DNA from: Rhodosorus marinus CCMP1338
Taxonomy: Eukaryota; Plantae; Rhodophyta
Assembly: GCA_029953675.1 (NCBI GenBank)
Contig: JAMWBK010000004.1
Span: 1,798,001 to 1,862,000, forward strand
DNA length: 64,000 bases
Direction: 5' to 3'
The position numbers were made by a program, and so were the translations under genes. The notes below the pieces were generated by a model. That model saw only the letters and a list, made by a program, of their open reading frames with translations. It ran no database searches and was not told the origin of the DNA. Shown here one piece after another: positions 6,897 to 46,728 of this stretch (position 1 is its first letter; the number at the start of each line of letters is the position of its first letter).

Positions 6897-9800
6897 ATGG
6901 AGGGAAGGACGAGGGCCAGTCTGATTTTGGAAAATGGTAGGAAAACTCTGGTCAGTACTGGGGCATAGCCCGCCGTGATAAACACCACGTTTGGCTGATG
7001 CGATCATCTCCCTATGGCAAAATCAGGACGAAAATTTGACGGTTGGAGTTTCGGGGCAGAGCACAGCGTTGCTGGAGAAGCCGTTTTTCAGACGGGCATG
7101 GTCGGTTATCCAGAAGCGCTCACTGACCCATCATATCATGGCCAACTGCTCGTCTTGACGTATCCGCTCGTTGGTAACTATGGAATTCCGTCTGACTCGG
7201 TAAGTGAACTTGTAGCCCTCACTTTCATGGGGTTGCAGACCGCTTTACGTACTCTGACGCTCGTTCTGTTTGTGAAAACATGCCAAGCTTGACCCAGAAA
7301 GTCAAATACCAAAATTCTTCGAGAGCGACAGGATCTGGGCTTCTGGCCTCGTTGTCTGCGAGTATTCTACGGAGTACTCGCACTGGAACGCCGAGAGATC
7401 TCTTTCGGAATGGTTGAAGGAGCACAATGTTCCGGCAATATCTGGGATTGATACCAGAGAGTTGACGAAGGTCATTCGCGAAGAAGGGACCATGTTGGGA
7501 AAGATTGACGTCGGTGGAGAAGGCCTAGATTTTGTGGATCCCAACCTGAGGAACCTTGTTGCTGAAGTATCTTCAACAACCGTGAAGCGAATTAGTAAGT
7601 TTTTGGCCCACTGCACAGCGCGACCGCATCTCGCCGAATTGCTAACTAGCAGTTCTGCACCCGTGGAACAGAGGGCATCGAGGGCGAAGATTCGTCATCT
7701 TTCAATGGCTTGACAGTTGTGGCTGTTGACTGTGGCATCAAGAACAACCAGCTTCGTTGCTTTCGGAAGAGAGGAGTGAACCTGATAGTGGTTCCGTGGA
7801 ACACAAACTTTTCAGAGCTTTACTCGGAGGAATCCTTCGATGGCTTATTTATCAGCAACGGGCCAGGAGATCCAAAACTATGCGAGGAGACGATCAAGAA
7901 TCTGGAAGATTTTATGTCGTCTACATCAGTGCCCGTGTTTGGTATTTGTCTTGGTCACCAGCTGTTGTCTCTTTCAGCTGGATTCTCCACATACAAGCTA
8001 CCTTATGGAAATCGCGGCCATAACCAGCCTTGCATCGATGAGATCTCCAAGAGGTGCTATATAACTTCTCAAAACCACGGTTTTGCGGTCAACGCCGATA
8101 AGGAGGAGTCGCCAAGCGGATGGCGCTCTTTGTTCTACAACGCAAATGACAAGACAAATGAGGGTATGTTTACAATGTAATTCTGTGGACACGGATGAGC
8201 GGACTCCCTGTGCTAAGTCATTTTCACAATTGTGCACTTTAGGGGTAATGCACAAATCCAAGCCGTTCTTCTCGGTCCAGTTTCATCCCGAAGCAAGAGC
8301 CGGACCACATGACACAGAATTTCTGTTTGATGTGTTCTTGGAAAGCGTCGCTAACCAAAAGAAAACTGGCGAGATACAATCCGTTGCACCACTACTCAAG
8401 AAGTATTGCGTAAACCTTGAGACCCAGCTGCCGAAACCGCCAAAGCTGAACAAGGTTGTAGTCCTAGGAAGCGGCGGTTTGAGCATCGGGCAAGCAGGAG
8501 AGTTTGATTACTCTGGGTCGCAGGCCATCAAGGCTCTGAAGGAGGAAGGGATATATACGGTTCTAATCAATCCCAACATAGCGACAGTTCAAACTTCACG
8601 AGGACTAGCCGACAAAGTCTACTTTCTGCCAGTGAATGTCGAGAACGTGATTAAGGTCATGAAGAATGAGAGACCAGACGGAATCCTGCTGACATTTGGT
8701 GGTCAAACGGCACTAAATTGCGGTACCCAACTGCATGCCATGGGCGCTTTCGAGGAGAACGACGTGAAAGTTCTGGGCACACCGATCTCTTCAATTCTGG
8801 ACACTGAGGACAGAGAGCGCTTCAATTCTCGCCTCGCCGAAATAGGAGAGCCTTTCGCAAGATCTGAGGCAGTTTCCAGCGTTGAAGATGCTGTTGTTGC
8901 GGCAAAGAATGTGGGTTACCCAGTCATTGTTCGTGCTGCGTTTGCTCTTGGTGGCCTGGGATCCGGTTTCGCTGACAATGATGCTGAGCTAGTTGAACTC
9001 GTGAACAAAGCCTTTACAGCATCCCCTCAAGTCCTTGTGGAACGATCCATGAGAGGCTGGAAAGAGGTGGAGTACGAGGTTGTCCGAGACGCCTATGACA
9101 ACTGCGTGACTGTCTGTAACATGGAAAATTTTGATCCACTGGGTGTTCATACGGGCGATTCGATCGTCATAGCACCGAGCCAGACGCTTACCGACGAGGA
9201 GTATCACATGCTACGGGACGCAGCCCTTCGAACGGTTCGCATGCTGGGGGTTGTTGGTGAATGCAATATTCAATTCGCCTTGAATCCAAACTCACTTCAG
9301 TATTGCACAATTGAAGTCAACGCGCGTCTGTCACGGTCATCAGCTCTTGCTTCAAAGGCGACGGGTTACCCGCTTGCGTTCGTCGCGGCAAAGCTTGCAC
9401 TCAGGAAGCGTTTGTCTGACCTACAAAACTCGATAACAAGGAAAACCATTTCCTGCTTTGAGCCCAGTCTGGACTATTTGGTGGTCAAAATGCCGAGGTG
9501 GGATCTTGCGAAATTCGAACGAGTTAGCCGAAAACTCGGTTCGGCCATGAAGTCTGTTGGTGAAGTCATGTCCATTGGGAGGACCTTTGAAGAAGCAATT
9601 CAGAAAGCGCTCAGGATGGTTACTGACAACTACGCCAGTGGATTTGAGCCTGGAATCGTTGAATACTCCGAAGAGGAAATGAAACGGCCAACAGATCAAC
9701 GACTTCTCTCAATAGCAAGTGGACTTGAAGCTGGCTTAACTGTGGACGAGCTCCACACCATGTCCAACGTTGACAATTGGTTCCTGCATAAGCTCAAGAA

Positions 9801-12800
9801 AATTGCAAACTTCCGACAGCACGTTCGGAAGCTGGCTGAGAGCTCGGCTGAGCTTGGGCGTGATGAAATTAAGAAAGCGAAACTTCTTGGTTTCAGCGAT
9901 CGTCAGCTCGCAAAGCTGATGGGCGACAGCGAAATGGGCATCCGTAAACTGCGTTTATCACATAACATTTGTCCCTGTGCGAAACAGATCGATACTGTGG
10001 CTGCAGAGTTTCCGGCTTATACAAATTATTTGTACTTGACATATTCGGCCCCAGAGAGCAAGGCCAATGATATAGAATTTACGGACCCCGGAATCATGGT
10101 CCTCGGATCCGGCGCCTATCGAATAGGATCTTCAGTGGAATTCGATTGGTGCGCAGTGAGCGCCATTCGAACCCTAAAACAGTACAACTATCCGGCAATC
10201 ATGATGAACTACAACCCAGAAACGGTTTCGACAGACTACGACGAATGCGACCGCTTGTACTTCGAGGAGCTTTCATTTGAAAGAGTGATGGATGTGTACC
10301 ACTTGGAGTCCGCGCAGGGAGTTATCGTGTCAATGGGAGGACAGATCCCAAACAATTTGGCTATGCTTTTGCACAGACAGCAAGTCAACATTCTTGGAAC
10401 GTCTCCGGATATGATCGATGGGGCAGAAAATCGCTACAAGTTTTCTCGCATGTGCGATAGAATCGAGGTTGACCAACCAAAATGGAAGGAGCTAAGCTCG
10501 GTGGAAGACGCGCAAGCCTTTTGCGCAAAGGTAGGCTAGATTCCTTTGGCAATCGATTTTCAATATTGCCACTACTGATTGGATTGATTATTCCTACATT
10601 TGAAGGTTGGGTATCCAGTGCTTGTGAGACCCAGCTACGTCCTTTCTGGAGCGGCAATGAACGTCGCACATAAACCAGAAGACCTCAACTCGTACTTGAC
10701 TGAAGCAGCTTCAGTATCAGCAGACTATCCAGTTGTCATCTCAAAGTTCATACTCGAAGCCAAAGAAATCGAAGTCGATGCTGTTGCGCGGAAGGGTGAA
10801 CTGGTTATGCATGTCGTTTCCGAGCACGTCGAGAATGCGGGAGTTCATTCTGGAGACGCGACACTTGTGCTCCCACCCGTGGATTTGGACCAGGTAACTG
10901 TTGGAAAGGTTGAAGAGGCCACTAGAATGGTCGCAAATGCTTTGAACGTCACCGGCCCGATGAATATTCAGTTCATCGCCAAAGAAAATGAAATCAAAGT
11001 CATCGAGTGCAACCTGAGGGCTTCTCGGTCGTTCCCGTTTGTGAGCAAGACAATTGGAATTGATATGGCAAGGCTCGCAACGAAGGTCATTTTGGGGAAG
11101 AACACCCGACCATATCCAGTTGACGTATCGAAGACTCCTCATATTGGAGTAAAAGTCGCGCAGTTCTCGTTTACTCGGCTTCTCGGAGCTGACCCCATAC
11201 TTGGTGTCGAGATGGCCTCCACAGGTAATGACTGCTCGTAGGTCCTTCAAGAAGGGCTTAATTTTCAACAAGGCTATTGCTGAACGGTCGACCTTTCAAC
11301 ATGCAGGAGAGGTCGCTTGCTATGGATCGAACCGGGAGGAAGCCTACCACAAGGCCCTACAAGCTACTGGACAAAAAATCAATCTCAAGAGCATTTGCAT
11401 ATCCATAGGCGCTTACAAGGAAAAGCTTGAATTTTTGTCCTCAGCGAAGATGTTGCAGTCCATGGGGATCAAGATTTACGCAACGTCCGGAACCGCCGAT
11501 TTCTTGAAGGAGCACGGTGTGAACGCAACGGTCGTCTTGTATCCAGCTCCGACCGAGTACCTAAAGGATTCTCAAGACAGCGTGGTCGAATTGCTAAGGA
11601 CTCATGAAGTGGATGCATTGATCAACATACCGAGCAACAACAAATACCGCCGAGTAGCCAGTTTTACCTCTAAGGGTTACCTTACTCGGCGGGCAGCAGT
11701 GGATTTCGGTGTACCACTTATTACCAACATCAAGATTGCAAAACTTTTGGTGAAGGCCGTGAAGTTAGCTTCGAAGCAAGAAAGCTTTCCATTGAAACCC
11801 TATGATGCGAGGTTCTCGTCTAGAGTGATCACCTTACCTGGAATGGTTAATCTCGACGTTCTGGATGCCAAGAATGTCGACTGGTCAAGCGCAACCGCAG
11901 CTGCACTGACGGGTGGCTTTACAATGATAACTACGGTACAGAAATGTTCTACCTTAACGGGCATAGAACAAGGTGAGACCAAAGCGAATGTATCAACGTT
12001 CGAAGCGTCATATCTCACCAACATGTGTCGTTGCGCAGAAATTGAGTCTGCACACAAAATTGCAGGAGGCGGAATTCGCTGCGACTATGTGCTTCTGGCT
12101 GCCGCATCGAACTCGAACTCTTCTGTAATTCCAGCCGCGTCAAGCATTTCACAGGGCTTGTACATTGAACCAGAAGCGGGAGAAAGCTCCCTTACACCCT
12201 GGCTTTCTCACTTTAAGAGTTGGCCATCGAGCTCGCCAATCATTGCCAAAGCATCTGGCCAGGCACTAGCTTCGTTGTTGTTCGGGGCAGTTTTGGAGAG
12301 GCGGGAGATTCACATCCGGCAGGTATGGCTATTGTTTTCCCGAAAAAGGCTTTCTTCGATGAGTGGAAACGTCCTTACTTGAATCGTCTGATGCACAGGT
12401 GAGAACTAGGGAGGATCTCCAAATAATTAGAATTAGCAAGGAGAAGGGAATGTCCGTCACTTGCGACGTAGATGTGATGGATCTCTACGCGAAATCTGCT
12501 TCGGACCTGGCAATTTCCGTTGCCGATAAGGAAGCTCTTTGGGAGTCGCTGGATTTGATTGACGCTGTAACTGGCCCACCGGAGTTGGTCATTTCGCTGC
12601 TGCTGCAGTCGGAGGGCGAAGGGCGGCTTCCCCAGGGTTGGGTCCGGTCAAGGCTCGTTGACAATCCAAGGAGAATTTTGGGATTGACGGATACGAAGGA
12701 TACGTACATAGAAGTCGATATGTCTGAGTCATGGGATGCTCCAGCAGCCTCGGAGCTTTCTGGAACGAAGTGCCTAGGAAAAGTCCGACGGGTTGTGCTC

Positions 12801-14458
12801 AGAGGAGAAATTGCGTTCCTGGATGGAAAAGTGAGCTACTCACATCGACAATTTGTTGAACTCGTATGGCGGAGGATTTGCTGAAACTTCCCACTTCCAC
12901 ATTCTAGGTTTGGTCGGCGGAAGGGGCAGCGAAGAATGAAACTCGGCTGGTGGTCGAAGACGCTTCAACCATGCTGCCTTCTTCCGACGCACGGAAGGAA
13001 ACGGGCTTGGCAAGAAAGAGAGCCCCATCGTTGTCCAACCTGAAGGTTTTGTCATTGGACCAGGAAGAGGTATGGGAAGACCTGAAGCGCAACCTACGGA
13101 CCCGTTTCTCACGTATTCTTTTTATTTTCAGGCAATGAACCAGTCCATGGACGGAGCCGAAGAGCAGGCATCATTGCTTGCAGCGGGAAGCATCGATAGT
13201 AAGCGTCCGCTTCTGCACATGTCGAAGGTCTCGGACCGTGCAAAACCAGCCTCCACATCGCTCATGAGGCGTCCTTCGGATCGCACCGGAACTTTGAGCT
13301 GGGTTGGTCGCGATATTTTGAGCATCAAGGACTTCAATCGGGATGAGCTGCACATATTGTTTAATTGCGCATATGAGATGAGACAAATCGTTAGCCGAAT
13401 GGGCCAATACGATATCCTGAAAGGGAAAGTATTGGCAAACCTCTTCTATGAGCCAAGCACACGCACTTCGTGCTCATTCGAGGCAGCTATGACTCGGCTT
13501 GGTGGTTCGACGATTTCAGTTCGGGAGGCTTCCACGTCCTCGGCGGCCAAGGGTACGTGTCCAGTGATATTCCACCTGCTTGGCATGTGAACTATTGAAA
13601 CAAGCCGGAAGGCGATTGTTAGATCCTACGTCCTTAGTCGTGGCTATTCGTGGACTTCGAGTATCTAACCTTGGATTTGACACTCGTATATGGTCTTCAG
13701 GTGAGAGCCTCGAAGATACTGTAAGGACCATGGAAAGCTATTGTGACATAACCGTATTGCGGTATCCAGTGGCTGGAGAAGTACAGGTACAGTGCCGAAA
13801 AGAAAAAGCAGCCAAGATCGCCCTTGCCGGGATATCTAATCGATCTAGTGTACTTTTTTAACTTCCCTTTCGCCAGAGAGCTGCTTCTTTTGCTCGGAAA
13901 CCAATGATCAACGCCGGAGACGGCGTTGGAGAGCATCCCACTCAAGCCCTTCTAGACGTTTTCACAATCCGAGAGGAACTAGGAACAGTTAACGGAATAA
14001 CTGTTGCCTTTGTTGGAGATCTGGCGAATGGTCGCACAGTCCATTCCTTGGCTAAACTGCTCAGTTTCTACAGCGTCAAACTGCGCTATGTAAGTCCGAA
14101 ATCACTGTCCATGCCCTCAGAGGTTTTGGACGAAGTGGCGAGCAGAGGAGTTGATCAGAGCGAACATACCGAGCTTGAATCGGTGGTTCGCGACTGTGAC
14201 GTCCTATACGTCACACGTGTTCAGAAGGAGAGGTTCGCAGACATGGAGGAATACGAGCGTTTGAAGCTCCAGTACTGCATCACTCCAAAGACTCTGATTA
14301 AGGTTAAGGATACTGCGATCCTCATGCACCCTTTACCTCGGGTTGGAGAAATATCATCAGAGTGTGACTCCGACCCGCGTTCAGTCTACTTTAGACAGAT
14401 GGAATATGGAATGTACATCCGAATGGCGCTGCTTGCGATGCTTTTAGGGAAGGTTTAG
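6897..14458 (+). CDS. URA2: Multifunctional pyrimidine synthesis protein: GATase + carbamoyl-phosphate synthetase + inactive dihydroorotase-like domain + aspartate transcarbamylase (CAD/URA2 type), more than 10 introns
   Basis: Start [24 protein letters not shown]...[17 protein letters not shown]. GATase motifs FGICLGHQ and [10 protein letters not shown]; CPS motifs [22 protein letters not shown] and [17 protein letters not shown]; DHO-like stretch [12 protein letters not shown]...CDYVL...IHIRQV...VTCDV; ATC motifs [53 protein letters not shown]. Confidence 0.96.
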
Positions 14459-14804: not shown

Positions 14805-16233
14805 TCAGTCAGCGAGTGCGCCGCCACAACTGGAACCGGTTCCCGCCGTACATGCGTAGCAATGCTTGGCCGTTCTAATGCGCATGTTGTTCAAATCGCT
14901 CCACTTCTCTACGTCAAATACAGTCATTCCTTTGGGTAGGAACTCGGGTCTCTCCTCGCTGCTCTGGCCCGCTGGCATTCGAACTGAACAGATCAACGAC
15001 AGGAAGTACAGTGCGGGAGTCAGCAACGCTTTTCGGTTCTCCGCATGTAGTAGACAAAAAACATGTACCACAGAGCGACTTTGTCAGGAGCGATGCGTAC
15101 CAGGCATCTCAAGTGCGTAGTTAAAATCGCAATCATAAAGCTGTCCATCCCATGCGACATGGATCTGGTCCACACACATGACTTTGTCCACCGTGCTGGG
15201 GTTGAACTTGCTCAACAATAAGTGGAGGTACTCCTCGAGTTTGTCACTTCTCCTAAGGTCGTCGGCAAACCTCTTAATAGGCATGTTAGCGATCGTGATG
15301 AGACTAGTGAACTGGATCCCGAACGCTCTCTTCAATTCTCGTCGATAGTCTTCCTCCAATCGCGCTTGCGCGGGTGGTAGGAATGCACCTCCCGGGTTGT
15401 AAACAAGATCAAGCTCCAAACCGGAACCAGGAAGGCCGTATCCTGGATGAACAGAGGAGACATGTTTAAGAGTTGAGCTCGATGGGGTGGGAGACGCATC
15501 GAGCTAGAAGCACATGTCGAACCTAGCGAGTTGAGCTGTTGTAGCCCAGCGATGCTGGAATCAAAGACTCCATCTCCGCGTTGAGCTTCAACGTTGTCAG
15601 CGGTGTAGCACGGAAGGGAAGCCACAACTTTGACTTCGTTCTCTGCCAAGAAGTTGGCTGCGTCCGGTATCTGTTCAAGTATAGTCAGGTTGCAGCGATC
15701 AATAATTTTAAGTCCCAGTTCTCTGAACTTCAGCACTAACGGGCGAAACTGTTCGTGCATTTCGGGGGCACCACCCGTTATGTCTACCGTGCTTATGTCG
15801 TTTTCAGACTGAGTTAGTTTGACAAGCCGATCCGCTACGATTCTCGGCATCGTCTCCTTGCTCGATGGACTGGACTCCACATGGCAATGTGAACATGCCT
15901 GGGTTCAAACGTAGGCGTTCCAGATTTTTGGTTAGAAAAAATGTGGAATTTCATCCCACAAACCCGCAAGAGCGAGTTTACACCTACCTGATTGCAAGTA
16001 AGCCCTATGTTAATCTGCAACGTTGAAACTCGGTTCCTGTTCAACTGTCCCAGTTCGAGGTCACGCAACGTTTTATCAAAAGACGGAACCCTCACATGTG
16101 AAATATCACGTCTCGCCTTCTTCTTCTCCTCCAACGCCTGCTTCCGCTCTGTCCTCTCACTTGCCACATTCGTCCTCACCGCTCCACCCCTCCTCGGGAC
16201 ACAACTCAATCCACTTACGAAACCTACCATCAT
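14805..16233 (-). CDS. arsS: ArsS-family (arsenosugar biosynthesis) radical SAM/Cys-rich protein with a probable plastid transit peptide, 4 exons
   Basis: LQINIGLTCNQ/ACSHCHVESSP gives CX3CX2C across an intron. Also VDITGGAPEM, IDRCNLT, VVASLPCYTADNVEAQRGDGVF, LDLVYNPGGAFLPP, LITIANMPIKRF, VMCVDQIHVAWDGQLYDCDFN and the C-terminal HCYACTAGTGSSCGGAL signature. The N-terminus MMVGFVSGLSCVPRRGGAVR resembles a transit peptide. Confidence 0.88.
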
Positions 16234-23718: not shown

Positions 23719-26113
23719 AACTTTTTCTCAGCACAAAGTATTCCCAGCACAGAAGCAAAAAAAAAACCAGGAAATCCGCTAAACACCAGTACAACAACCT
23801 CTGTGGCTACCCTCTCCTCCAAAACAGGTCCACCAACAAGGCTCAGCAAAAGCTCCTCATTGACACCAGGTGACTTCTTCAACTACTCCGAGCCTCAGCT
23901 ACAGTCCTCCAAATCCAAGTCGTAGCAAAATCCTCTTACGAAAGGACGGATTATCAGTGTACATTGTATACAAAATTATCCATCTCTCCCAATATTCTTG
24001 AAAACTCTTTCAGCCCTCATCAGCTGCTCCCTCCCCCAGCCCTCGTACCGACCACATCAACTCCAATCCCAGCTGTCCCCGTCGGTGTTCCCCGTTGAAT
24101 CCATTCCGATCAATATTCCAATATTCGAGATAAAAATGATATATTCAATCAAAAAGGATAAAATGATTGAACTTTGCGAATGGTAAAGCTGGTTTTCTCG
24201 GTTTGCGTATGGATCGGATCCTCAACGTACTGATCATCATCTCTGCCGAGTTCTGGCGACTTGTGAGGATAGCAGTTATGGAGGATACTCGGATAAACGC
24301 TGGCTCGGATGGAGCAGCAGACAAAATTTGTAATGCGGAAAATACTGGAAAAGTGGTTGTGATTTGTGGCCTTTGTTTGGTCATGCTGATGCTGTTTTGC
24401 CTGGAGCCATGGACGTCTGGATATCTGCAGGTGTCCCCAGGCCTATGTGAGAGCTCTTTTGAGCCGCTGCTTTCTCGTTCCGTGTACCGGGACAGGAGGA
24501 ACAAAGTTCCAGATATCTCCCTTATTTCGGAGAACTCCGTCTACAACCAGTTAATCAGCGAGCTTGGGGTCTCGCCCTAGTTAAGCTCCCGTCTGTATTA
24601 TCTAGCTCATACTCCATCCGTTGTCTCGTGGCTTGACATCCGGTACTTACATGATTGTTAGGAGCGACACACGAGGAATAGGAGACACCCTGAACGTAGG
24701 GATTTATATATCTCATTTGAAAAGTAGGTTTGAGTTCGGCTAGTACGTATCGAAAAACTAATCGATCTTCCTTCCTATTACTATTTTTTTTGGAGTGACA
24801 CCTAAAACCAGCATGCCTCAGTTGTGTGCGTGTGACAATGACTTTGTCACCTTCATACACCAGCATGGTATTAATGTGACAAAGTCTTCGTCATGGCCGG
24901 AATAGGGCCAAGGACATCTGAATGATCGATATCAACTACTCTCAATATGCTTTCCTTTCGCAGGCTGAGACGGGTGCTAAATGGTTTTGTCACCTTCGTA
25001 GACGAGTACAGCAGACACGCAAGGGTCTATGGAATTGGGCAGAAAACTGAGGCGTGCTGACCTTCGGGTGCACTCGAACAATACTAAATAGTCAATTACT
25101 AATAATTACTAACCCGCGTTACAAGCCGAACCCAATGAAGTCACCCCCCCGTTACCACACATTTTCTACGACCCCGCAAATTGCTACACCCCCCTTATAA
25201 AGTATCTGTAAAATCTTCCGCACCACATTTAATATCATATAGAAGTAATTTTGTTATACCTTCCAGCACTAACTCGTCTTCTTAGACAAACCCGTAACAG
25301 ATTTTGCCGATAGATGCATCTTCAAAGCATCGATTCCACCATGCCCTGGAGGAATTGTCTTTTTGGCGGCATAAACCCCCCAAAGTAACGTCCAATCCAA
25401 CCTAAAACCTTGTATTGCTAAATTTATCTAAACGTACAATGGGACAGTCTGTCTCCTTTTCTGAATGAAATTGATGACTTTTGTTCACAGCCCGCTTTCT
25501 CGCGGTTGCTGTTTGCGTCTCGAACTGAACGCTTTCAAAGAAGACAACTGAAGTACTGGAAAAATTAACACTTATTCGTTTGTATGATATGTAAAACACT
25601 CTCCCATCCATTCAATGCTGTTTCTGATGAGAGGAAGAATGGTTTCAATCTGCGTATCTCTGAGCGTGGAAAAGGAGAGGAAGCATTGCCGCCTTTCCCT
25701 CAGATCCCCCTCCTCCACACACCCACCGAGGATGGAGCTTGATTTTGCATCTATGTATATCCTTGAGAGGGAGACCGTTTCACCGCGTGGTGATATCTTC
25801 TCAGTTCCAATTTTCTCCTGAATTTTCCCTTCACCGCGTGGCTAACATGAACTGGTTGCTCTCTTTAAAGAGTTTGGCGTTGCCCTCCCCAACTGAATGG
25901 AATCTGCCGGTCCCGTGGAAGGTTGAAAACATTTAGTTCGATCTTTCCGTCTGCTGAGACAGATTCGTTTCGTTGGGGAGGGTGACGAGGGTTTGGAAGG
26001 AAGGATGGGATTGTAGTCTTCTTTTAGATTTGTTGTAGTGTTGAATTGAAGGGTTTGCGTGATTTGAAGAGGAGGTTTTTTTTTCTCCTTGTTTTCCGAC
26101 TTCGAAGTTCGGG

Positions 26114-27898
26114 ATGGCGGAAGGGGAAAAGAAGGGAGGAATGTTTTTAAAGTCGTTGAGGCCCAAGACCTCAAAGCCGGCTCCAGAGCCTTCCGAGAAT
26201 CGTGTTTTAGACAAGATGGTGAAGGAGTTGGTGGACGATGTGCTGAGGACCGGTAGGTGCATGTTGATGGCATATGAGATATTTCTGCCCTCGTGACCCT
26301 TCAGCCTCACGGGTGTTTATGTGCTGATTAAGTTCCCTTTGGCTTGATTAGGACGAAATGGTCACTATGGAGAGGAGCTGAAGGTCAACCTGCTGGAGTT
26401 TTGTAGGTCGGAGCTGACCACTGCCTCGGCGTGTGCCAGAGCGATCCTTCATGCTCTCTCCTTGCGATCGCGGCCAGTGCTGGATATTTTAGATCTCCTG
26501 TATTTCATGGTGAAGAATCTGGCGAATTTCTATAAGCTGGTTGGCAACGATTCCTACTTCAGACTTCTGTGGCAGATCGGGCTCCCTTTGGATCTTGGAA
26601 AGAATGTGAAGAAGATTTTCAAGAGAAAGGATGGTCCTAAGCTGATATCCCCATCTTCGGCTGAAGGTAAACTGCAATCACAGAGGCTGGATACGCAGTG
26701 ATTGGTCGGTGTTGGTCTAAGTTGCTTCGATATGTGATTTGCCCCATACAGCAAAAGAAACGTTGATGCTGATTCGTGCCTGGTCCGAGGAGCTTGAAGG
26801 TGCGGGGATAGCGGATAGGTCGGCTACGTATATCACTGAAGCCTATCGACAAAAACAAAGCGTGGCTGAGTTTCCGGAAGTAGACCAGAGCCGAGGTCCG
26901 TACGTGGCATATGGGGAAGGGCCTCAGCCCACCGCGGCCGCGGCCGCGGCCTCATCTAGTACATCGCGCCGAGGGGTAAGTTTGCCAAAAGCGTGGACTC
27001 TAGTAACGAATTATAGATTTCTCACATGTGGACTCGTCCCTAGGTTTCAAACGCAGAGAACAAGTTGACTCTTGAAGATGCGGAAAACACTGTTTCGCTG
27101 CTGGAGAGTCAGCTGGAAAACGCAGATCCGGCAACGGTAGGCGATGATGACGTAATTGCGCAAGTTGCTGACCAGGTTAGGGTGGAGCTTCTCGACTTTC
27201 AAACGATCATGAGGAACTCGCCCAACGAGGATGTAAGAGCTATTGAAGTCAGTGAGAGGATGCAGGAGAGCCTCAGGAGATATGAGGGAATGGTGAAGGG
27301 GGATATTGTAGCGCCCATCGTGTCGGACTTGGGTCCACCGCAAGCGTCAACCCGTGTAGCTGCAGGCAGCGACGGAAACGTTACCAAGTCTAGATCCACC
27401 GCGTCGGCTCGACCAGTGTATGCGCAAGGATCCGTTCCGGTCGCCACTGGCGCCCCACCACAGGGCTATGGTGCTGGAGCCCCACCAGCCCCACCAACCC
27501 AGACTACACCTCCTCCAGGGTCGTACACTGTGACGTACGCACCTACCGCAGCCCAAGCTCCTGCTCAAGCTCCTCCGCAAGCTCCTTCGCCTCAGCCGTC
27601 TTCTGCTGGAGTTCCTATTGCAGTACCACTCACCGCAGCAGCCGTGGGCGGTGCTGCTACAGCCACTGCTATGTATCAGAGACCCGTTTCTCAAGCACCA
27701 GCGGCCGCGCCGCAAACGGGACCACCAACTGCCCAGCAAACGATTGCTACAACGAAAGCACCTGCACCTGTACCAGCACCAGCACCGGTACCAGCACCAG
27801 CAACTGCCCCTACCCCTGCCCCAGCGCCGGTCTTTATACCTGCTCCAGTGCCAGTCCCTGTCAACGTTCAAAGAGCACCTGCTAGCAAGCCCACGTCT

Positions 27899-27945
<47 letters not shown>

Positions 27946-30615
27946 AGCTCCAGCTCCAGCTCAGCCACGAGTGCCGGTTGTTGCGCCATCTCCTGTGTCC
28001 GTCCCTGTGACCACTCAAAGCGCTCCTGCACCTGCACCAGCTGCTGCACCCGTACCCGCACCAGCACCTGTTGTGGTACCCGCTCCTAAGCCCGCCCCTG
28101 TGACTACTCAAAGAGCTCCTGCTCCTGCTCCTGCTCCTGCATCTAAGTCTGCTCCTGCATCTTCCCCTATTCCTGCCTCTGCCCCTATTCCTGCCTCTGC
28201 ACTGGCACCGGCCAATGCTCCTGCGCCCGCGCCAGCTGTCGTTCGGGCACCAGGGCCAGCACCGGTTGTTGTTCCTGCTCCTGTGCCAGTCCCTGTGAAA
28301 GCCGAAAGAGCTCCAGCTGCTGTACCGGATCCTAAACCTGTTCCTAAACCGGTGCCTGCTTCCGCTCCTGCCGCACCACCAGGCGCTCCTGTTACTGTCG
28401 CGGTTCCTGTAGCAGCTCAATCAACAAAAGAGGTTCCCGAGAAACCTGCTGAACCTGAGGAACCAGCGCCGTCAACTCTGAAGGAGAAATCAACAGACAA
28501 GGGAGACTCAGTCGCTGCTGTGACCATGTCTGCGCCTGTTCCCTCCACCAAAGCAAGCGAAGCAGGGAACGTGAAAACCCTCACGAAGTTAAAATCGTCC
28601 TCAGATGTTCTTGATCAGTCTGCGTCGAAGAAAACGAATCTTGCACCTGAACAAGCTGTGAAGGGCATTCAAACTAGTGAAACGGGGCTAGATTCAGCAG
28701 CGGTCCCTACGGCCAAGGAAGCACCCATACCAGCGCCCGTAGCAGTTCCAGCTCCTGTTCCAAAGTCAGCACCTGCACCAGTTCCGGCTCCGGTAACAAC
28801 ACCAGTTCCGGCTCCTGTACCAGCACCAGTTCCGGCCCCTGTACCAGTGCCAGTACCAGCGCCAGTACCAGCGCCAGCACCAGCACCAGAGTCAGCACCT
28901 GCGCCAGCACCAGCACCCGAGTCAGCACCTGCGCCAGCACCAGCACCAGAGTCAGCACCTGCACCGGAGCCTGCACCAGTTCCGGCTCCGGTAACAACAC
29001 CAGTTCCGGCTCCTGTAGCAGCACCAGTTCCGGCTCCTGTAGCAGCACCAGTTCCGGCCCCTGTAGCAGCAGCAGTTCCGGCCCCTATACCAGTGCCAGT
29101 ACCGGCGCCAGCACCAGCACCAGCACCAGCACCAGCACCAGCACCAGCACCAGCACCAGCATCGGTACCAGCGTCAGTGCAGGTACCAGTACAGGTACCA
29201 GTAGAGGCACCAGCACAGGCCTCAGAACCAGTACCTGCCGCCACCGGACCCACAGAAGTATACGCTCCTGCTCCCCTGCCTGAATCCTATGCAGCATATG
29301 CACATGTTCCTGCCTACGGCGCAAGGGGGGCACCCGCAGAGGTCGTTTACACAACAATACCTCTTGGCCCCCCGGAGGCAGTACAGGGTTCGCCTGTTGC
29401 TGCGCAGCAGTACGGCGACCAGTACATGATACCGCAAGGGCGGATGATGGCAGCTGAGGCTCCGCCGCCACAGCAATATGCGCAAGTTTCTTACGCCGGA
29501 GCACCCCCGCCTGCGCGAGCTGAATCAAGGAGACGAACCGGGATTGATGAACCTGCTGAGTATCAACAATCTAAGCCAAAAGAGCCGAGCCGTAGGAAAT
29601 CCTCGCGTAATGCTCAAGGAGAATTGACGAAGTCAAAGTCATCAAAGAATTCGGGACGAAGCAGCTCTAGGGGAGTCCCGTCTGAGCAAGGTATGAAGAA
29701 ACAGCATTATGGCGCTAAGCCTTTCTCTGTTTGTATTTGAGAAACTTACTCGGCCTGTGGCGTATGCAGCACGTGTTCCTGTCGTGGCTGATCCGGATGG
29801 CATTGAACGGGCCTACATGACAGCACCATCGCAGCCTGTCCCCGCGCCGCAGCTCGTGGCTATCGGGGATCAGTTGTACTACGCTCACACCCAGTACACT
29901 GACGAGTCGGGCCGACCAATACAAGTAAGAAGTGTACCCACGGAACAACCTCCTGCACAAGTTCTATACGCTGGGCAGCCACCGCAGCAGCAGCCGTTGC
30001 AGCAGCCAGTAGTACGCCCGCAGCCTGTTGCAGCACCACCACAGCAACAGTTTGTATATGTTCCTGGAGTTGGCTACCTGCCGGTGAAATCGGAGCAATT
30101 TGCACAAACAAGCGCAGCCCCGCCCCAGTACCAGCAATTGGAGCAGCCTATAGAGAATGCACAACAGGCGCAGTATAAGACCGTTCAGGTGACACCACCG
30201 AGAAGCTCCTCCCGCAACTCTGCGAATTCAGCGATTGCGTCGAATCTTGAGGCGCTCACAAGACCCCAGACTGTTCGACAAGAACCGACCTATACAAGCG
30301 CCCCACCACAGCCAGCAGAGCTTGCTCCGGTTCAGCAACCTCAAGCGGTGGCACCCTCATACCAGTCGATTCAACAGGCGTATCAAACGGTCCCATCAGG
30401 ACAAGCCTACGTGATTGGAGTACCTCAACAAGCGCAACCGCAGCAGGTATGAAACGAACAGGGCTGCTATGCACATGCACTATGCCTCTTGTTGACAAAC
30501 AATTTTAATTCCGTACGTGTTGTAGGTCGTGTACGCACCGCCACAGTACGAACAACAACTGCCGCCGCCTCCTCCTCCAGATCAATACTACACTCAGTAC
30601 TACACTTCTCGCTGA
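26114..30615 (+). CDS. TOM1-like VHS-GAT protein with a very long Pro/Ala-rich linker and a Gln/Pro/Tyr-rich tail, multi-exon
   Basis: VHS-like exons ([23 protein letters not shown]...[27 protein letters not shown]...[14 protein letters not shown]...ITEAYRQK...EFPE) and GAT-like helices ([19 protein letters not shown]...[15 protein letters not shown]). These are followed by roughly 600 aa of PA/PV repeats. The final exon [29 protein letters not shown] ends at 30615. Confidence 0.72.
27760..29225 (+). repeat. Coding low-complexity (Pro-Ala/Val)n array with hexamer microsatellites and duplicated blocks
   Basis: (GCTCCG)n then (GCTCCA)n at ~27899-27960, (GCACCA)n at ~29111-29158, three [10 protein letters not shown] units at ~28870-28965, and two [12 protein letters not shown] blocks at ~28780 and ~28980. 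Confidence 0.95.
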
Positions 30616-40770: not shown

Positions 40771-41763
40771 ATGAAGTCCTGTGAAGTCTCGTTCATTCCT
40801 TGTGGGTTGAGATTGAACGAGGTCGGCGACCGTCGGAGACGGAGTATCTGTTACGGCGCCAAGGTCCCTGAATCTGTGAAGCGATACCTGCAGAGTGTTG
40901 GAGGTGAAGCTAGAGGTTTGGTAGCGCTGAATCGAGTTCTGGTTTCAGGGGATGAGGTCGCTGATGGTGGGCTGGTGACGTTGGGCAGCGAGGATTTGCG
41001 GACCTGGCATGTGAGGAACATTCTCAAGGTTGAGGACGGCGACCGGATTCGCGCTGGCGTGGTGGACGGCGAGCTGTTCGATGAGGCCGAGGTGACGCTT
41101 GGAGAGGATGGAGGAATTAGTTTGGAGCTAGGATCCGGCGTGCTCGTCAATGATGTGCCCAGTGTTGACGTCCTCTTGGCGTTGCCGAGGCCGGGAGTCA
41201 TGAGCCGGATGTGGTCCGCTCTCGCAAGCCTCGGCGTCGGAAACATATTTGTGGTCAACGCCTACCGCGTCGAGAAAACCTACTTCAGCTCGAAGGTCAT
41301 GAGAGAGGCTGAAATTCGCGAAGCCCTAGTTTCTGGCCTCATGCAGTCCGGCTGTGATTCCAGAGTACCCAAAGTCGTCGTCAGCAAGCGGCTGAAGAAC
41401 TTTCTCACGGATGAACTGGACAAGCACACACCCCGTGAAGCTCTCCGGGTCGTCGGACACCCGGGTTCTGACCTAAGGAGGCTTTCGCAGATGGACTTGG
41501 GAGAGGTTAAAAGGATTCTTGTCGCGATCGGCCCGGTAGGCTGATTTCCCCTCGCAACCGAAAAGCGTATTTGTATTGACGAGGTGGTCTCTTGCTCGCG
41601 CGTGTGTGATTAGGAAGGAGGATGGATGGACCGGGAGATGAGCATGCTTGAGAGCTTTGGATTCCAACCCATCTCTTTGGGACAACGCGCACTGCGTACT
41701 GAAGTCGCCTGTGCTGCGCTTGTAACTTTAGCTCACGATCGATTGGCCTCGGAGTGTGCATGA
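40771..41763 (+). CDS. rsmE: 16S rRNA m3U1498 methyltransferase RsmE (SPOUT family), probably organelle-targeted, 1 intron
   Basis: WHVRNILKVEDGDRIRAG, VLLALPRPGVMSRM, LGVGNIFVVNAYRVEK, ILVAIGP/EGGWMDRE...ISLGQRALRTEVAC; stop TGA at 41761-41763. Confidence 0.88.
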
Positions 41764-44085: not shown

Positions 44086-46728
44086 TTAATCCTTGTCCCT
44101 CGCGGTATCAACGAAAAAGAACTGTCCGCTCGTTTTCTGCTCAACGTCCTTGACAGAGTTATTCTTGTTAATTCTCGGTCGGAAGTTGGTTGGATCTCTC
44201 CTGAATGTGATTTCAAGGTTCTTCAGGAATATGTTCATTCCCGTAAGCAGTGGCTGAGGTGTGTGTGCAGTGCAGTCCATCGCCGGCGTACCATCATACA
44301 CCACGACCTGGTCATAAGAAATAGTTCAATCGGTAGTTAGGAGATGAATACTGACCCAAAAGCAATGTTCAGCGTCTGTTCAGTGTCTGTTCAGCGGCCT
44401 CACCCTGTCCGCTAGGTATGTGGCCATGATGAAATCGTGTTCCACGATGAATGCCGTCTTCTTTGCATGCAGAATATAGCGCTTGATTACTTTAGCGGCG
44501 ACAATACGCTGGTCAGAGTCGAGGTAGGCGCTCGGTTCGTCAATGAGATAAATATCCGCCGGTTTGCCTGTGCGTCGATGAAGAACAAAACTGGTCTGAA
44601 AAACGTCCAGAAGTGTCCCTCCAAGCGTTTTAGGCGATACGCACCTAATGCCATCACCAAGGCTACTCTCTGGAGTTCTCCTCCAGAGAGATGTTTGACC
44701 TCCTCGTCCAAAAGTTGCTCAATCATCATAGGCTTTGTAACGTCGCTCATAAATTGGGGGTGGAGATAAGTATCTCGAATCCTCTTATGCAAGAGCTGTC
44801 TGACTGTTCCATCGAACGTCGGAGATATTTTCTGAGGCTTGTACGAAACGTTCAGGGTCGGTACCTGAGTATCAAGAAGAAAGAAACGGCCGTGTAAGAG
44901 CTCATGCATGCCCATCCGATAGTTGGAGGTTCCAACCGTCGGAGAGGGTGAACCATGAGGCAGTGCAGATGGCTCTCACCTGCGCGTCTGAATCAGCTTT
45001 TGTTAGTCCGGCTAGCATTCGAATGAAGGTAGTTTTTCCCGTTCCATTCTCCCCCAGCATTACGACAATCTCGGAATCCGTAAAATTGCCCGCTTCGACT
45101 CTGAGCTTAAAGCTGTGATATCAAAGCAGTGCGAAAAACGCATGGTCTTAGAGTTCGCAACCCAAATATTGCAGTCGGTTCCCAAAATATTCCGAAAGGA
45201 TCCACCACTTACCTCCCAAGCGACTTCGTCATATCGGGGTATTGGTACATTTTGTGGTCTTCGCCTCTATCGTCGCCATCCGCAGTTTCCGCAATTTTGA
45301 AAGTGAGAGAAGTTTCACGGAATCGAAGATTCTCCGTCGGTACAAAGCCAGCTAGGAAGACGTTGATTCCTTCCCTCACGGAAAAAGGAACCGTGACCAC
45401 TCCATACGCGCCGGGCTTGCCATATAAACAGCAGACGTAATCCGAAAGGTAGTCCAGCACGGCCAGATCGTGCTCGACCACGATGACGTACTTGTTGTCC
45501 CTTTCGCTAACGATTTCCCGAATGATCTACGTCAACAAAGACCAGTAGATTCGAGAGCTGAGTACTTTGATAGCCGGTTCGAGTGTCACACTTTAACAGG
45601 CTCGGTAAAAACTTACAGATGCCGCTTTTAGTCGTTGTCTCACGTCCAGGTACGAGCTCGGCTCATCAATCATGTAAACGTCTGCCTCTTGGACATATAC
45701 AACGGCCAAGGCAAACCTCTGCAGCTCCCCACCCGAGAGGATTTGAACGTCGCGGTCCATAACTTTCTCCAAGTCGAGTTCCACCAACGCGTGCTTAATC
45801 TGTAATGACACCGGATAAAGAAGATTAGCAGGCAGTTCTTCATCTCCAACGCCGATACAGCACAGCACAGAAACAAAATGCTGCGTTTTGCTGCTTACCA
45901 GCTTTCGTTCGTCTCTTTTGGATACAATTGATTCCACTGTGCCCTTTGCGGCCTTGGGAATCGCATCAACATACTGCGGCTTGATAATCGCCTTCAAATT
46001 ATCTTCCAACACTCGTGTAAAGTAATTCTGGAGCTCGCTGCCCCGAAAATAGGTCAGGATCTCCTGCCAGTCCGGCGGGTTATCCCATCTGCCTAGGTTG
46101 GGCTTCAACTTTGCCGCGAGAACCTGAACTCACAGAAGGGTTCCAGGAAGATTCCTTCAGATACGATTCACGCTGACAGAGGAACTTCATTGCGAAAATT
46201 CTGCGTACCTTAAGCGCCGTGCTTTTTCCAATTCCATTGGTACCCACCAATCCAAGCACCTGCCCAGGCCTTGGCGTGGGTAGCCTGTGAAGTTTGAAAG
46301 CGTTTGCTCCAAACCTGTGTACTGTCTCCTTGTCAAGATTCTTAGGCAAGTTGATAATCTGAATTGCGTCAAACGGGCACTTCTTCACGCAAATACCACA
46401 TCCAACGCACAGTTCCTCGGAAATGTACGCGATTCGGTCTTTTGAGGTTACTTCAATGCAAAGCTTGCCTATTTCGTGAAGGTAACATCTTGATCAGCAC
46501 AAGAAGTCGTTTTGAGGTTCTACACATGCCTGCAATGTCCAGGCATCAGGCGGGCAAGGCAAACAATGACCATTCAACAGCAATCGGATCAAAGCATCAT
46601 TCTGCACACGCGAAAAAGCACTTACCCATTCGCACCACGGGACAGGATTTCTTGCACTCCTGCCTGCATTTCTTCGGCTTACATCTATCACTGCTAACGA
46701 TAGCAATTCGCTCGAGCTTGTCCGACAT
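44086..46728 (-). CDS. ABCE1: ABCE1/RLI1 ribosome-recycling Fe-S ABC ATPase, multi-exon
   Basis: [107 protein letters not shown]. Confidence 0.97.

Follow-up and report, generated by a model that had tools for sequence, protein, structure and literature searches.

We report that a 64,000-nucleotide stretch of the red alga Rhodosorus marinus CCMP1338 (assembly GCA_029953675.1, contig JAMWBK010000004.1, positions 1,798,001 to 1,862,000; hereafter the window, with positions counted from its first nucleotide) carries a nuclear gene, arsS, for the arsenosugar biosynthesis radical S-adenosylmethionine (SAM) protein ArsS. The identification of its product as a full-length and intact ArsS orthologue, comprising a radical-SAM core and the Cys-rich DUF3641 domain, is well supported by sequence comparison. 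Taking the reading as a whole, we consider it fairly probable that this nuclear gene encodes an enzyme with the chemistry of the characterised ArsS, as suggested by analogy, and that the enzyme acts in the plastid, as suggested by its N-terminal leader. In seaweeds, arsenic occurs mainly as arsenosugars and arsenolipids, and through seaweeds these compounds reach the human diet. To our knowledge, the key C–As bond-forming enzyme of the arsenosugar route, ArsS, reportedly identified by Xue et al. in 2019, has been studied only in a cyanobacterium.

Gene model and gene product

The gene lies on the minus strand and consists of four exons and three introns, as follows.

14805..16233, minus strand: arsS gene from start to stop codon, four exons, 380 amino acids (aa); based on the spliced model, the identity with KAJ8905818.1 and the TIGR04167 score
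15988..16233, minus strand: exon 1 (aa 1-82), which encodes the leader, the basic helix, the beginning of the core and the first of the three CX3CX2C Cys
15899..15987, minus strand: intron 1, 89 nt, GT..AG, splitting CX3CX2C between Q82 and A83; junction confirmed by the colinear MMETSP protein P0001
15523..15898, minus strand: exon 2, aa 83-208 with a split final codon; radical-SAM core, matched by Pfam Radical_SAM at residues 74-174
15443..15522, minus strand: intron 2, 80 nt, GT..AG; from the spliced model
15101..15442, minus strand: exon 3 (aa 208-322), covering the last part of the core and the greater part of DUF3641, with C297 and C312 (DCDFN)
14984..15100, minus strand: intron 3, 117 nt, GT..AG, with an in-frame TGA inside
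14805..14983, minus strand: exon 4, aa 322-380 and stop codon; C-terminal Cys-rich motif

The lengths of introns 1 and 2 are not divisible by three and an in-frame stop codon lies in intron 3, so that only the spliced form of arsS is open, and retention of any of the three (89, 80 or 117 nt) would break the reading frame. At its N-terminus the open reading frame (ORF) is bounded by an in-frame TGA three codons 5' of the ATG. From end to end, the 380-aa product shows 100% identity with KAJ8905818.1 (NDN08_002323), deposited for Rhodosorus marinus as a 'hypothetical protein', and the UniProt entry for the same protein (A0AAV8UW76) is named 'ArsS-like C-terminal domain-containing protein'. The ORF of an MMETSP transcript from a sister strain (P0001) is 93% identical to Rhodosorus ArsS and colinear with it across each of the three junctions, in support of the gene model and of the expression of the gene. 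The gene is nuclear, as it has three spliceosomal introns and eukaryotic neighbours (CAD, a flavin adenine dinucleotide (FAD) oxidase and Nop14) on a 3.19-Mb contig of the assembly. An initial annotation, made from the letters of the window, had described a complete, nuclear-encoded, four-exon radical SAM gene at 14805-16233; the spliced model and the identity with KAJ8905818.1 bear out the gene structure, and the introns and the eukaryotic contig bear out the nuclear origin of the sequence.

Membership of the ArsS family

Against the NCBIfam equivalog model TIGR04167 ('arsenosugar biosynthesis radical SAM (seleno)protein ArsS'), for which 300 bits is the cut-off, the Rhodosorus protein scored 404.4 bits, and the runner-up family reached 34.6 bits. 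Residues 64-378 align with positions 2-303 of the 303 in the model. In Pfam, Radical_SAM and DUF3641 (PF12345) were both recovered, the latter at 1.2e-49 and across all 134 positions of its model. Two motifs are located as follows.

15884..15996, minus strand: CX3CX2C radical-SAM [4Fe-4S] cluster motif, C80-N-Q-A-C84-S-H-C87, with intron 1 within its span
14820..14864, minus strand: C-terminal motif, H362-CYACTAGTGSSCGG-376

The C-terminal motif of the ArsS family, HCYACTAGTGSSCGG, is thus present in the protein, the C-terminus of which reads KHCYACTAGTGSSCGGALAD. The codon of C374, the Cys of SSCGG, is TGT (14828-14826, minus strand), which means that the Rhodosorus copy is no selenoprotein. 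Across an alignment of 108 eukaryotic, cyanobacterial and metagenomic homologues, including picocyanobacterial proteins named ArsS by NCBI, 60 columns were invariant, and the Rhodosorus protein keeps every invariant residue. These include ten Cys (among them C80, C84, C87, C151, C179, C297, C312, C363 and C366) as well as H362, A368, G369 and G371, and at least 90% of the sequences retain C374. The AlphaFold2 model built on this alignment reached a mean predicted local distance difference test (pLDDT) value of 89.3 and a predicted template modelling (pTM) score of 0.87; no structure of ArsS was found in the PDB. The family as collected here comprises 534 clusters at 50% identity (E <= 1e-30). 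The identity as ArsS, the two motifs and the absence of selenocysteine, all put forward in the initial annotation, are upheld by the equivalog score, the two Pfam domains and the invariant residues, by the motifs themselves, and by the TGT codon, respectively.

Association with arsenic methylation and proposed function

ArsS adenosylates dimethylarsenite (DMAs(III)) to DDMAA (5'-deoxy-5'-dimethylarsinoyl-adenosine) in a redox-neutral reaction, after which the adenine is removed and the ribose is decorated (PMC13598754; bioRxiv 10.64898/2026.04.29.721666). In Synechocystis, arsS is co-transcribed with arsM and its product uses the product of ArsM (bioRxiv 10.1101/2022.09.23.509062). Red, brown and green algae are the classic producers of arsenosugars (PMC11009773).

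We surveyed the gene neighbourhoods (5-kb flanks) of the best 80 of at least 597 confirmed bacterial loci, ranked by similarity to Rhodosorus ArsS. An ArsM-like gene was found within 5 kb of arsS, and mostly directly adjacent to it, in 25 of these 80 loci, and in 15 of the 46 with full flanks; the linked loci include near relatives of the Rhodosorus sequence, i.e., L001 (Thermoanaerobaculia, 55% identity), L004 and L008. A Pseudanabaena plasmid carries annotated arsM and arsS with one gene between them. Moreover, in a set of ten homologues of unusual length (630-757 aa), eight join ArsS to an ArsM-type methyltransferase in a single protein, in both domain orders (P0406, P0408, P0421, P0434, P0449, P0456, P0470 and P0512, the named ones being from Desulfosediminicola, Deltaproteobacteria and Eggerthellaceae). 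The bacterial linkage, the plasmid pair and the fusions are three independent lines of evidence, on the basis of which we conclude that the ArsS family belongs with arsenic methylation.

Since all conserved residues are kept, the Rhodosorus protein is expected, by analogy with the characterised enzyme, to catalyze the same reaction, i.e., the adenosylation of DMAs(III) to DDMAA. In the mechanism we propose, the [4Fe-4S] cluster held by C80, C84 and C87 would reductively cleave SAM to the 5'-deoxyadenosyl radical, as in the characterised ArsS; this radical would add to the arsenic of dimethylarsenite supplied by ArsM, and the resulting As-centred radical would hand an electron back to the cluster. 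The enzyme would reach the plastid by means of its short N-terminal leader, in which the phenylalanine motif of rhodophytes is seen, and would act there, with plastid ferredoxin as a possible source of electrons. The methyltransferase and the enzymes of the later steps would be encoded elsewhere in the R. marinus genome, if at all.

Other genes recur beside bacterial arsS in the loci read (L001-L080 and L088). A DUF2064 gene together with a family-2 glycosyltransferase gene was seen in 24 loci, a pyridine-nucleotide-disulphide oxidoreductase with a fused or neighbouring VTT/TVP38 membrane domain in 21, a metallophosphoesterase together with a CMD protein in 10, a PNP_UDP_1 phosphorylase in five and a PHO4 phosphate transporter in five. 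The phosphorylase would fit the step of adenine removal after DDMAA. None of these recurrent partners (DUF2064/glycosyltransferase, VTT reductase, metallophosphoesterase, phosphorylase or PHO4) has a match in the window, and the FAD/amine-oxidase neighbour of the Rhodosorus gene, considered as an analogue of the bacterial disulphide reductase partner, was rejected for lack of a match. Plasmid-borne arsS was also present on 49 Burkholderia records, mostly of B. glumae, and in Thiodictyon, Hymenobacter, Acinetobacter portensis and Pseudanabaena, indicating that the gene is mobile among bacteria; a further match falls in a part of a Cupriavidus record that carries no annotation. One picocyanobacterial ArsS cluster (P0197) is represented by a 414-aa protein with an added HxlR-type (PF01638) DNA-binding domain.

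N-terminal region and location of the protein

Two features precede the part of the protein shared with bacteria.

16171..16233, minus strand: candidate plastid transit peptide, aa 1-21 (MMVGFVSGLSCVPRRGGAVRT), with F at position 5; putative function
16108..16170, minus strand: eukaryote-specific basic helix, aa 22-42 (..ERTERKQALEEKKKARRD); from the AlphaFold2 model and the alignment

The match to the hidden Markov model begins at residue 64, and true similarity to bacterial proteins begins at about residue 48 (VPSF...). An apparent bacterial similarity to residues 6-45 was rejected, as the tblastn alignment ran through stop codons into non-coding DNA. Residues 22-42 form a helix in the AlphaFold2 model (pLDDT 87-93) with a semi-conserved (E)E.K.RR.L motif, which could be aligned in red, green and brown algae, the chlorarachniophyte and Corallochytrium, and is absent from bacteria. 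The transit-like N-terminal extension of the initial annotation is therefore real but shorter than it appeared, about 21 residues being free before the conserved helix. This leader (aa 1-21) contains three Arg and no acidic residue and is predicted to be disordered (pLDDT 53-59). It starts with MMVGFVSGLSCVP, in which MMVGFVSGL, with F at position 5, matches the rhodophyte plastid motif.

Plastid precursors of rhodophytes and glaucophytes carry a Phe-based motif at the extreme N-terminus that distinguishes them from mitochondrial precursors (PMC7038456). Among the orthologues, the red clade being compared through those sequences whose leader is 35 residues or longer, F occurs within residues 2-10 in 29 of 41 members of the red clade versus 9 of 35 members of the green/brown clade (Fisher p = 1.9e-4), and the usual red-algal starts are MAFV.., M.AF..P and MSAFATS. 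Because this N-terminal motif is present in Rhodosorus and recurs in the red-clade orthologues, we rate the plastid as the more likely location, and import of Rhodosorus ArsS into it as plausible judging from the leader.

A location in the cytosol or the mitochondrion is an alternative that we hold to be rather unlikely. It would account for the shortness of the free leader, an Arg-rich leader without acidic residues also fits mitochondrial presequences, and mitochondrial-looking leaders are found in homologues of the Corallochytrium clade. On the other hand, the N-terminal F motif is precisely what separates plastid from mitochondrial precursors in rhodophytes (PMC7038456), and the Rhodosorus protein has this residue at position 5, in keeping with its prevalence in the red clade over the green/brown one.

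The N-terminal regions also vary among the other eukaryotes, as seen when the module was compared in P0068, P0105, P0112, P0086, P0106 and P0100. Green-algal, brown-algal and chlorarachniophyte ArsS have an added conserved N-terminal block (GSLIPETL..EF..TA..L), and the brown-algal and Amorphochlora proteins an extra PVTPDF.TPV block. The Corallochytrium protein (P0065) and three EukProt relatives (P0091, P0096 and P0120) have Arg-rich leaders of mitochondrial appearance.

Distribution and origin

Homologues of ArsS were found in red algae (Purpureofilum, Rhodochaete, Pyropia, Gracilariopsis and Porphyridium), green algae (Tetradesmus, Scenedesmus, Coccomyxa and Trebouxia), brown algae (Ectocarpus, Scytosiphon and Discosporangium), the chlorarachniophyte Amorphochlora, and Corallochytrium. 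Of the red clade, two short members were located on contigs of eukaryotic appearance, and Mon2 lies on one of these contigs. Given this distribution, Rhodosorus ArsS is an expected member of a known family. It is not a surprising find, as a routine profile search detects it, the protein is already in GenBank and UniProt, and its relatives are widespread; the novelty given to it in the initial annotation, as a candidate eukaryotic enzyme, was overstated in view of the many eukaryotic homologues and the existing ArsS-like label in UniProt.

A neighbour-joining tree was built from Kimura-corrected distances (209 sequences, 303 columns, 200 bootstraps), in which cyanobacteria were sampled from two lineages, i.e., picocyanobacteria, retrieved with a Cyanobium ArsS query, and Pseudanabaena, retrieved by the plasmid search. 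All 25 named eukaryotes fell in one cluster with no named bacterium inside (bootstrap 22). Within it, the red clade (90), Rhodosorus with Purpureofilum (94), the green/brown/chlorarachniophyte clade (88), and red plus green/brown (52) were recovered. The picocyanobacteria were monophyletic (96) and placed inside a proteobacterial cluster (92), and Pseudanabaena grouped with Bacteroidota (58). Bootstrap values of the backbone and deep nodes were 2-4.

The initial annotation had suggested an endosymbiont-derived or horizontally acquired enzyme. Transfer of arsS from the cyanobacterial ancestor of the plastid has several points on its side: the characterised ArsS is cyanobacterial, red and green algae share the gene and cluster together (bootstrap 52), which fits a presence in early Archaeplastida, and with deep-node values of 2-4 the tree is compatible with such an origin. 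Nevertheless, we regard it as unlikely. Only one cyanobacterium appears among the best 80 of at least 597 confirmed bacterial loci; Pseudanabaena ArsS is 41% identical to Rhodosorus ArsS versus 55% for the Thermoanaerobaculia sequence; in mean distance to the eukaryotes, the cyanobacteria rank 21st to 87th of 88 bacteria; both cyanobacterial lineages join other bacteria (bootstrap 92 and 58); and sequences of the Corallochytrium clade lie within the eukaryotic cluster. Cyanobacteria were not recovered as sister to eukaryotic ArsS, or as a group in which it is nested, by neighbour-joining with two cyanobacterial lineages and a backbone bootstrap of 2-4. Thus, the sequence comparisons lend no support to an endosymbiont origin and identify no donor, and, as the backbone of the tree is unsupported, horizontal acquisition is not demonstrated either.

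We also considered that eukaryotic ArsS might be a single old lineage that does not derive from the plastid ancestor and is marked by a eukaryote-only N-terminal helix or module and by organelle targeting that differs between lineages, with plastid leaders of the F-type in red algae and leaders of mitochondrial appearance in the Corallochytrium clade. We find this doubtful; if true, arsenic adenosylation or a related reaction would be an organelle-based eukaryotic trait independent of photosynthesis.

Linkage to arsM in eukaryotes and weighing of the assignment

No arsM was detected in the window by tblastn with five ArsM queries (cyanobacterial, Chlamydomonas, dinoflagellate and diplonemid), the best match having E = 0.34, and the 29 largest ORFs of the window included no arsenic transporter, so that the initial annotation's statement on both counts holds. 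A methyltransferase was likewise lacking beside arsS in the five other eukaryotic loci read (Porphyridium, Gracilariopsis, Coccomyxa, a red-clade metagenome contig and a second metagenome contig), in agreement with its view that the pathway partners are unlinked. This missing linkage is compatible with membership of the ArsS family, because linkage to arsM is a contextual feature of bacteria and is not expected in a eukaryotic nucleus. In Gracilariopsis chorda (L083, 10001-12640), arsS lies tail-to-tail with a PF01553 acyltransferase gene, and the pair is repeated, with the same sequence, on an independent Logan contig; this may be due to chance or may hint at the synthesis of arsenosugar-phospholipids.

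Several observations weigh against a plastid ArsS with the chemistry of the characterised enzyme. A leader of about 21 residues before the conserved helix is short for a transit peptide, and the mitochondrial-looking leaders of the Corallochytrium clade imply that a plastid location is not a property of the family. An arsM gene is missing within 5 kb in 55 of the 80 bacterial loci, about two thirds, so the family may not always work with ArsM. When the Chlamydomonas ArsM sequence, taken from a PDB alignment, was used as a query, the best 120 matches came from green algae, dinoflagellates and diplonemids only, with no Rhodosorus or other red alga among them; the nine matches identified include Dunaliella, Tetraselmis, Prasinococcus, Neomeris, Acetabularia, Diplonema and Flectonema. 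In addition, a literature search, the coverage of which did not extend to the paper identifying ArsS, returned neither a tested eukaryotic ArsS nor a gene link between ArsS, DUF3641 or arsenosugars and eukaryotes.

Some of these points would also suit a protein that belongs to the ArsS family while acting, in its eukaryotic form, on another substrate or in another pathway, e.g., by adenosylating a different soft nucleophile. Besides the bacterial loci without arsM, many of which have DUF2064 with the family-2 glycosyltransferase, the VTT-disulphide reductase or the metallophosphoesterase instead, and the absence of an R. marinus ArsM from the best 120 matches to the Chlamydomonas protein, the eukaryotic copies have an extra conserved N-terminal module that is absent from bacteria, and the family is present in Corallochytrium, which is non-photosynthetic. 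We nonetheless judge a different substrate to be improbable: the score is far above the equivalog cut-off, all invariant residues are kept, the family is tied to ArsM through fusions and operon linkage, and red, brown and green algae are the very organisms in which arsenosugar production is classic (PMC11009773). As for a bacterial contaminant or a pseudogene, there is no point in its favour and we count it as already refuted by the three GT..AG introns, the eukaryotic neighbours on a 3.19-Mb contig, the intact frame with its conserved residues, and the transcription of a 93%-identical ortholog in a related strain.

Other genes of the window

The arsS gene is flanked by the following gene, which converges on it and stops about 350 bp short of the arsS stop codon, and three further features of the window are given with it.

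8083-14458, plus strand: CAD-type pyrimidine-synthesis gene, 3' part; 2183-aa product with the small and large chains of carbamoyl-phosphate synthase through aspartate carbamoyltransferase
27065-29740, plus strand: 891-aa ORF with only a weak GAT-domain match
40771-41544, plus strand: RsmE-like (bacterial-type) RNA methyltransferase ORF with a 130-residue N-terminal extension and SFIP near its start
44400-46400, minus strand: gene of an ABC protein in which two nucleotide-binding domains, but no membrane domain, were detected

The other genes encode a protein-kinase fragment, the FAD/amine oxidase, Nop14, the GAT-domain protein, an RRM protein, Vps18, the RsmE-like RNA methyltransferase, a complex I subunit, the ABC protein, Vta1 and a glutamate dehydrogenase. 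The 891-aa ORF coincides with the most GC-rich part of the window (26001-30000, 0.54-0.59). The RsmE-like protein may likewise be targeted to an organelle. With its two nucleotide-binding domains and lack of a membrane domain, the ABC gene (44.4-46.4 kb) was rejected as an arsenic transporter, and its product is probably a soluble factor of the ABCE/ABCF type rather than a transporter.

Implications and comparison with known systems

Rhodosorus arsS and its many algal relatives are obvious candidates for the C–As bond-forming step of arsenosugar synthesis in eukaryotes. The handles gained here are the validated model of the gene, its short leader of the F-type and the N-terminal helix specific to eukaryotes, and the bacterial partner genes (arsM, DUF2064/glycosyltransferase, VTT-disulphide reductase and PNP-family phosphorylase) are leads for the search of algal genomes.

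The ArsS of Synechocystis sp. PCC 6803 (SsArsS) likewise combines a radical-SAM core with DUF3641 and has both CX3CX2C and HC..CTAG.GSSC.G. In contrast to cyanobacterial arsS, the Rhodosorus gene is nuclear, has three introns and encodes a 47-residue eukaryote-specific N-terminus made of the leader and the basic helix. It also has no adjacent arsM, whereas arsS of Synechocystis is co-transcribed with arsM. Its product is 41-52% identical to the sampled cyanobacterial sequences and does not group with them in the tree.

The other eukaryotic ArsS proteins (Purpureofilum, Porphyridium, Pyropia, Gracilariopsis, Tetradesmus, Coccomyxa, Ectocarpus, Amorphochlora and Corallochytrium) are 49-61% identical to that of Rhodosorus. 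They share with it one cluster of the tree, the basic (E)E.K.RR.L helix before the core and, in the five loci read, the lack of linkage to arsM, but they differ in their N-termini: the leaders are of the F-type in red algae and mitochondrial-looking in the Corallochytrium clade, and the green/brown/chlorarachniophyte proteins have a longer conserved N-terminal module (GSLIPETL...).

Among other radical-SAM enzymes, ArsL, which is involved in arsinothricin synthesis, resembles ArsS in forming a C–As bond and in working with ArsM, but it is non-canonical in that it converts SAM to the 3-amino-3-carboxypropyl radical (bioRxiv 10.64898/2026.04.29.721666). ArsL was not among the best 25 of the 32 NCBIfam matches of the Rhodosorus protein, the match being to ArsS. 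The nearest solved folds to the AlphaFold2 model are SPASM/twitch-type radical-SAM enzymes (BlsE, SuiB, SkfB, EpeE, anSME and MoaA; Foldseek E 5e-11 to 1e-7, template modelling score about 0.45-0.55, identity 13-19%), which differ from Rhodosorus ArsS in their C-terminal Cys pattern and in their substrates.

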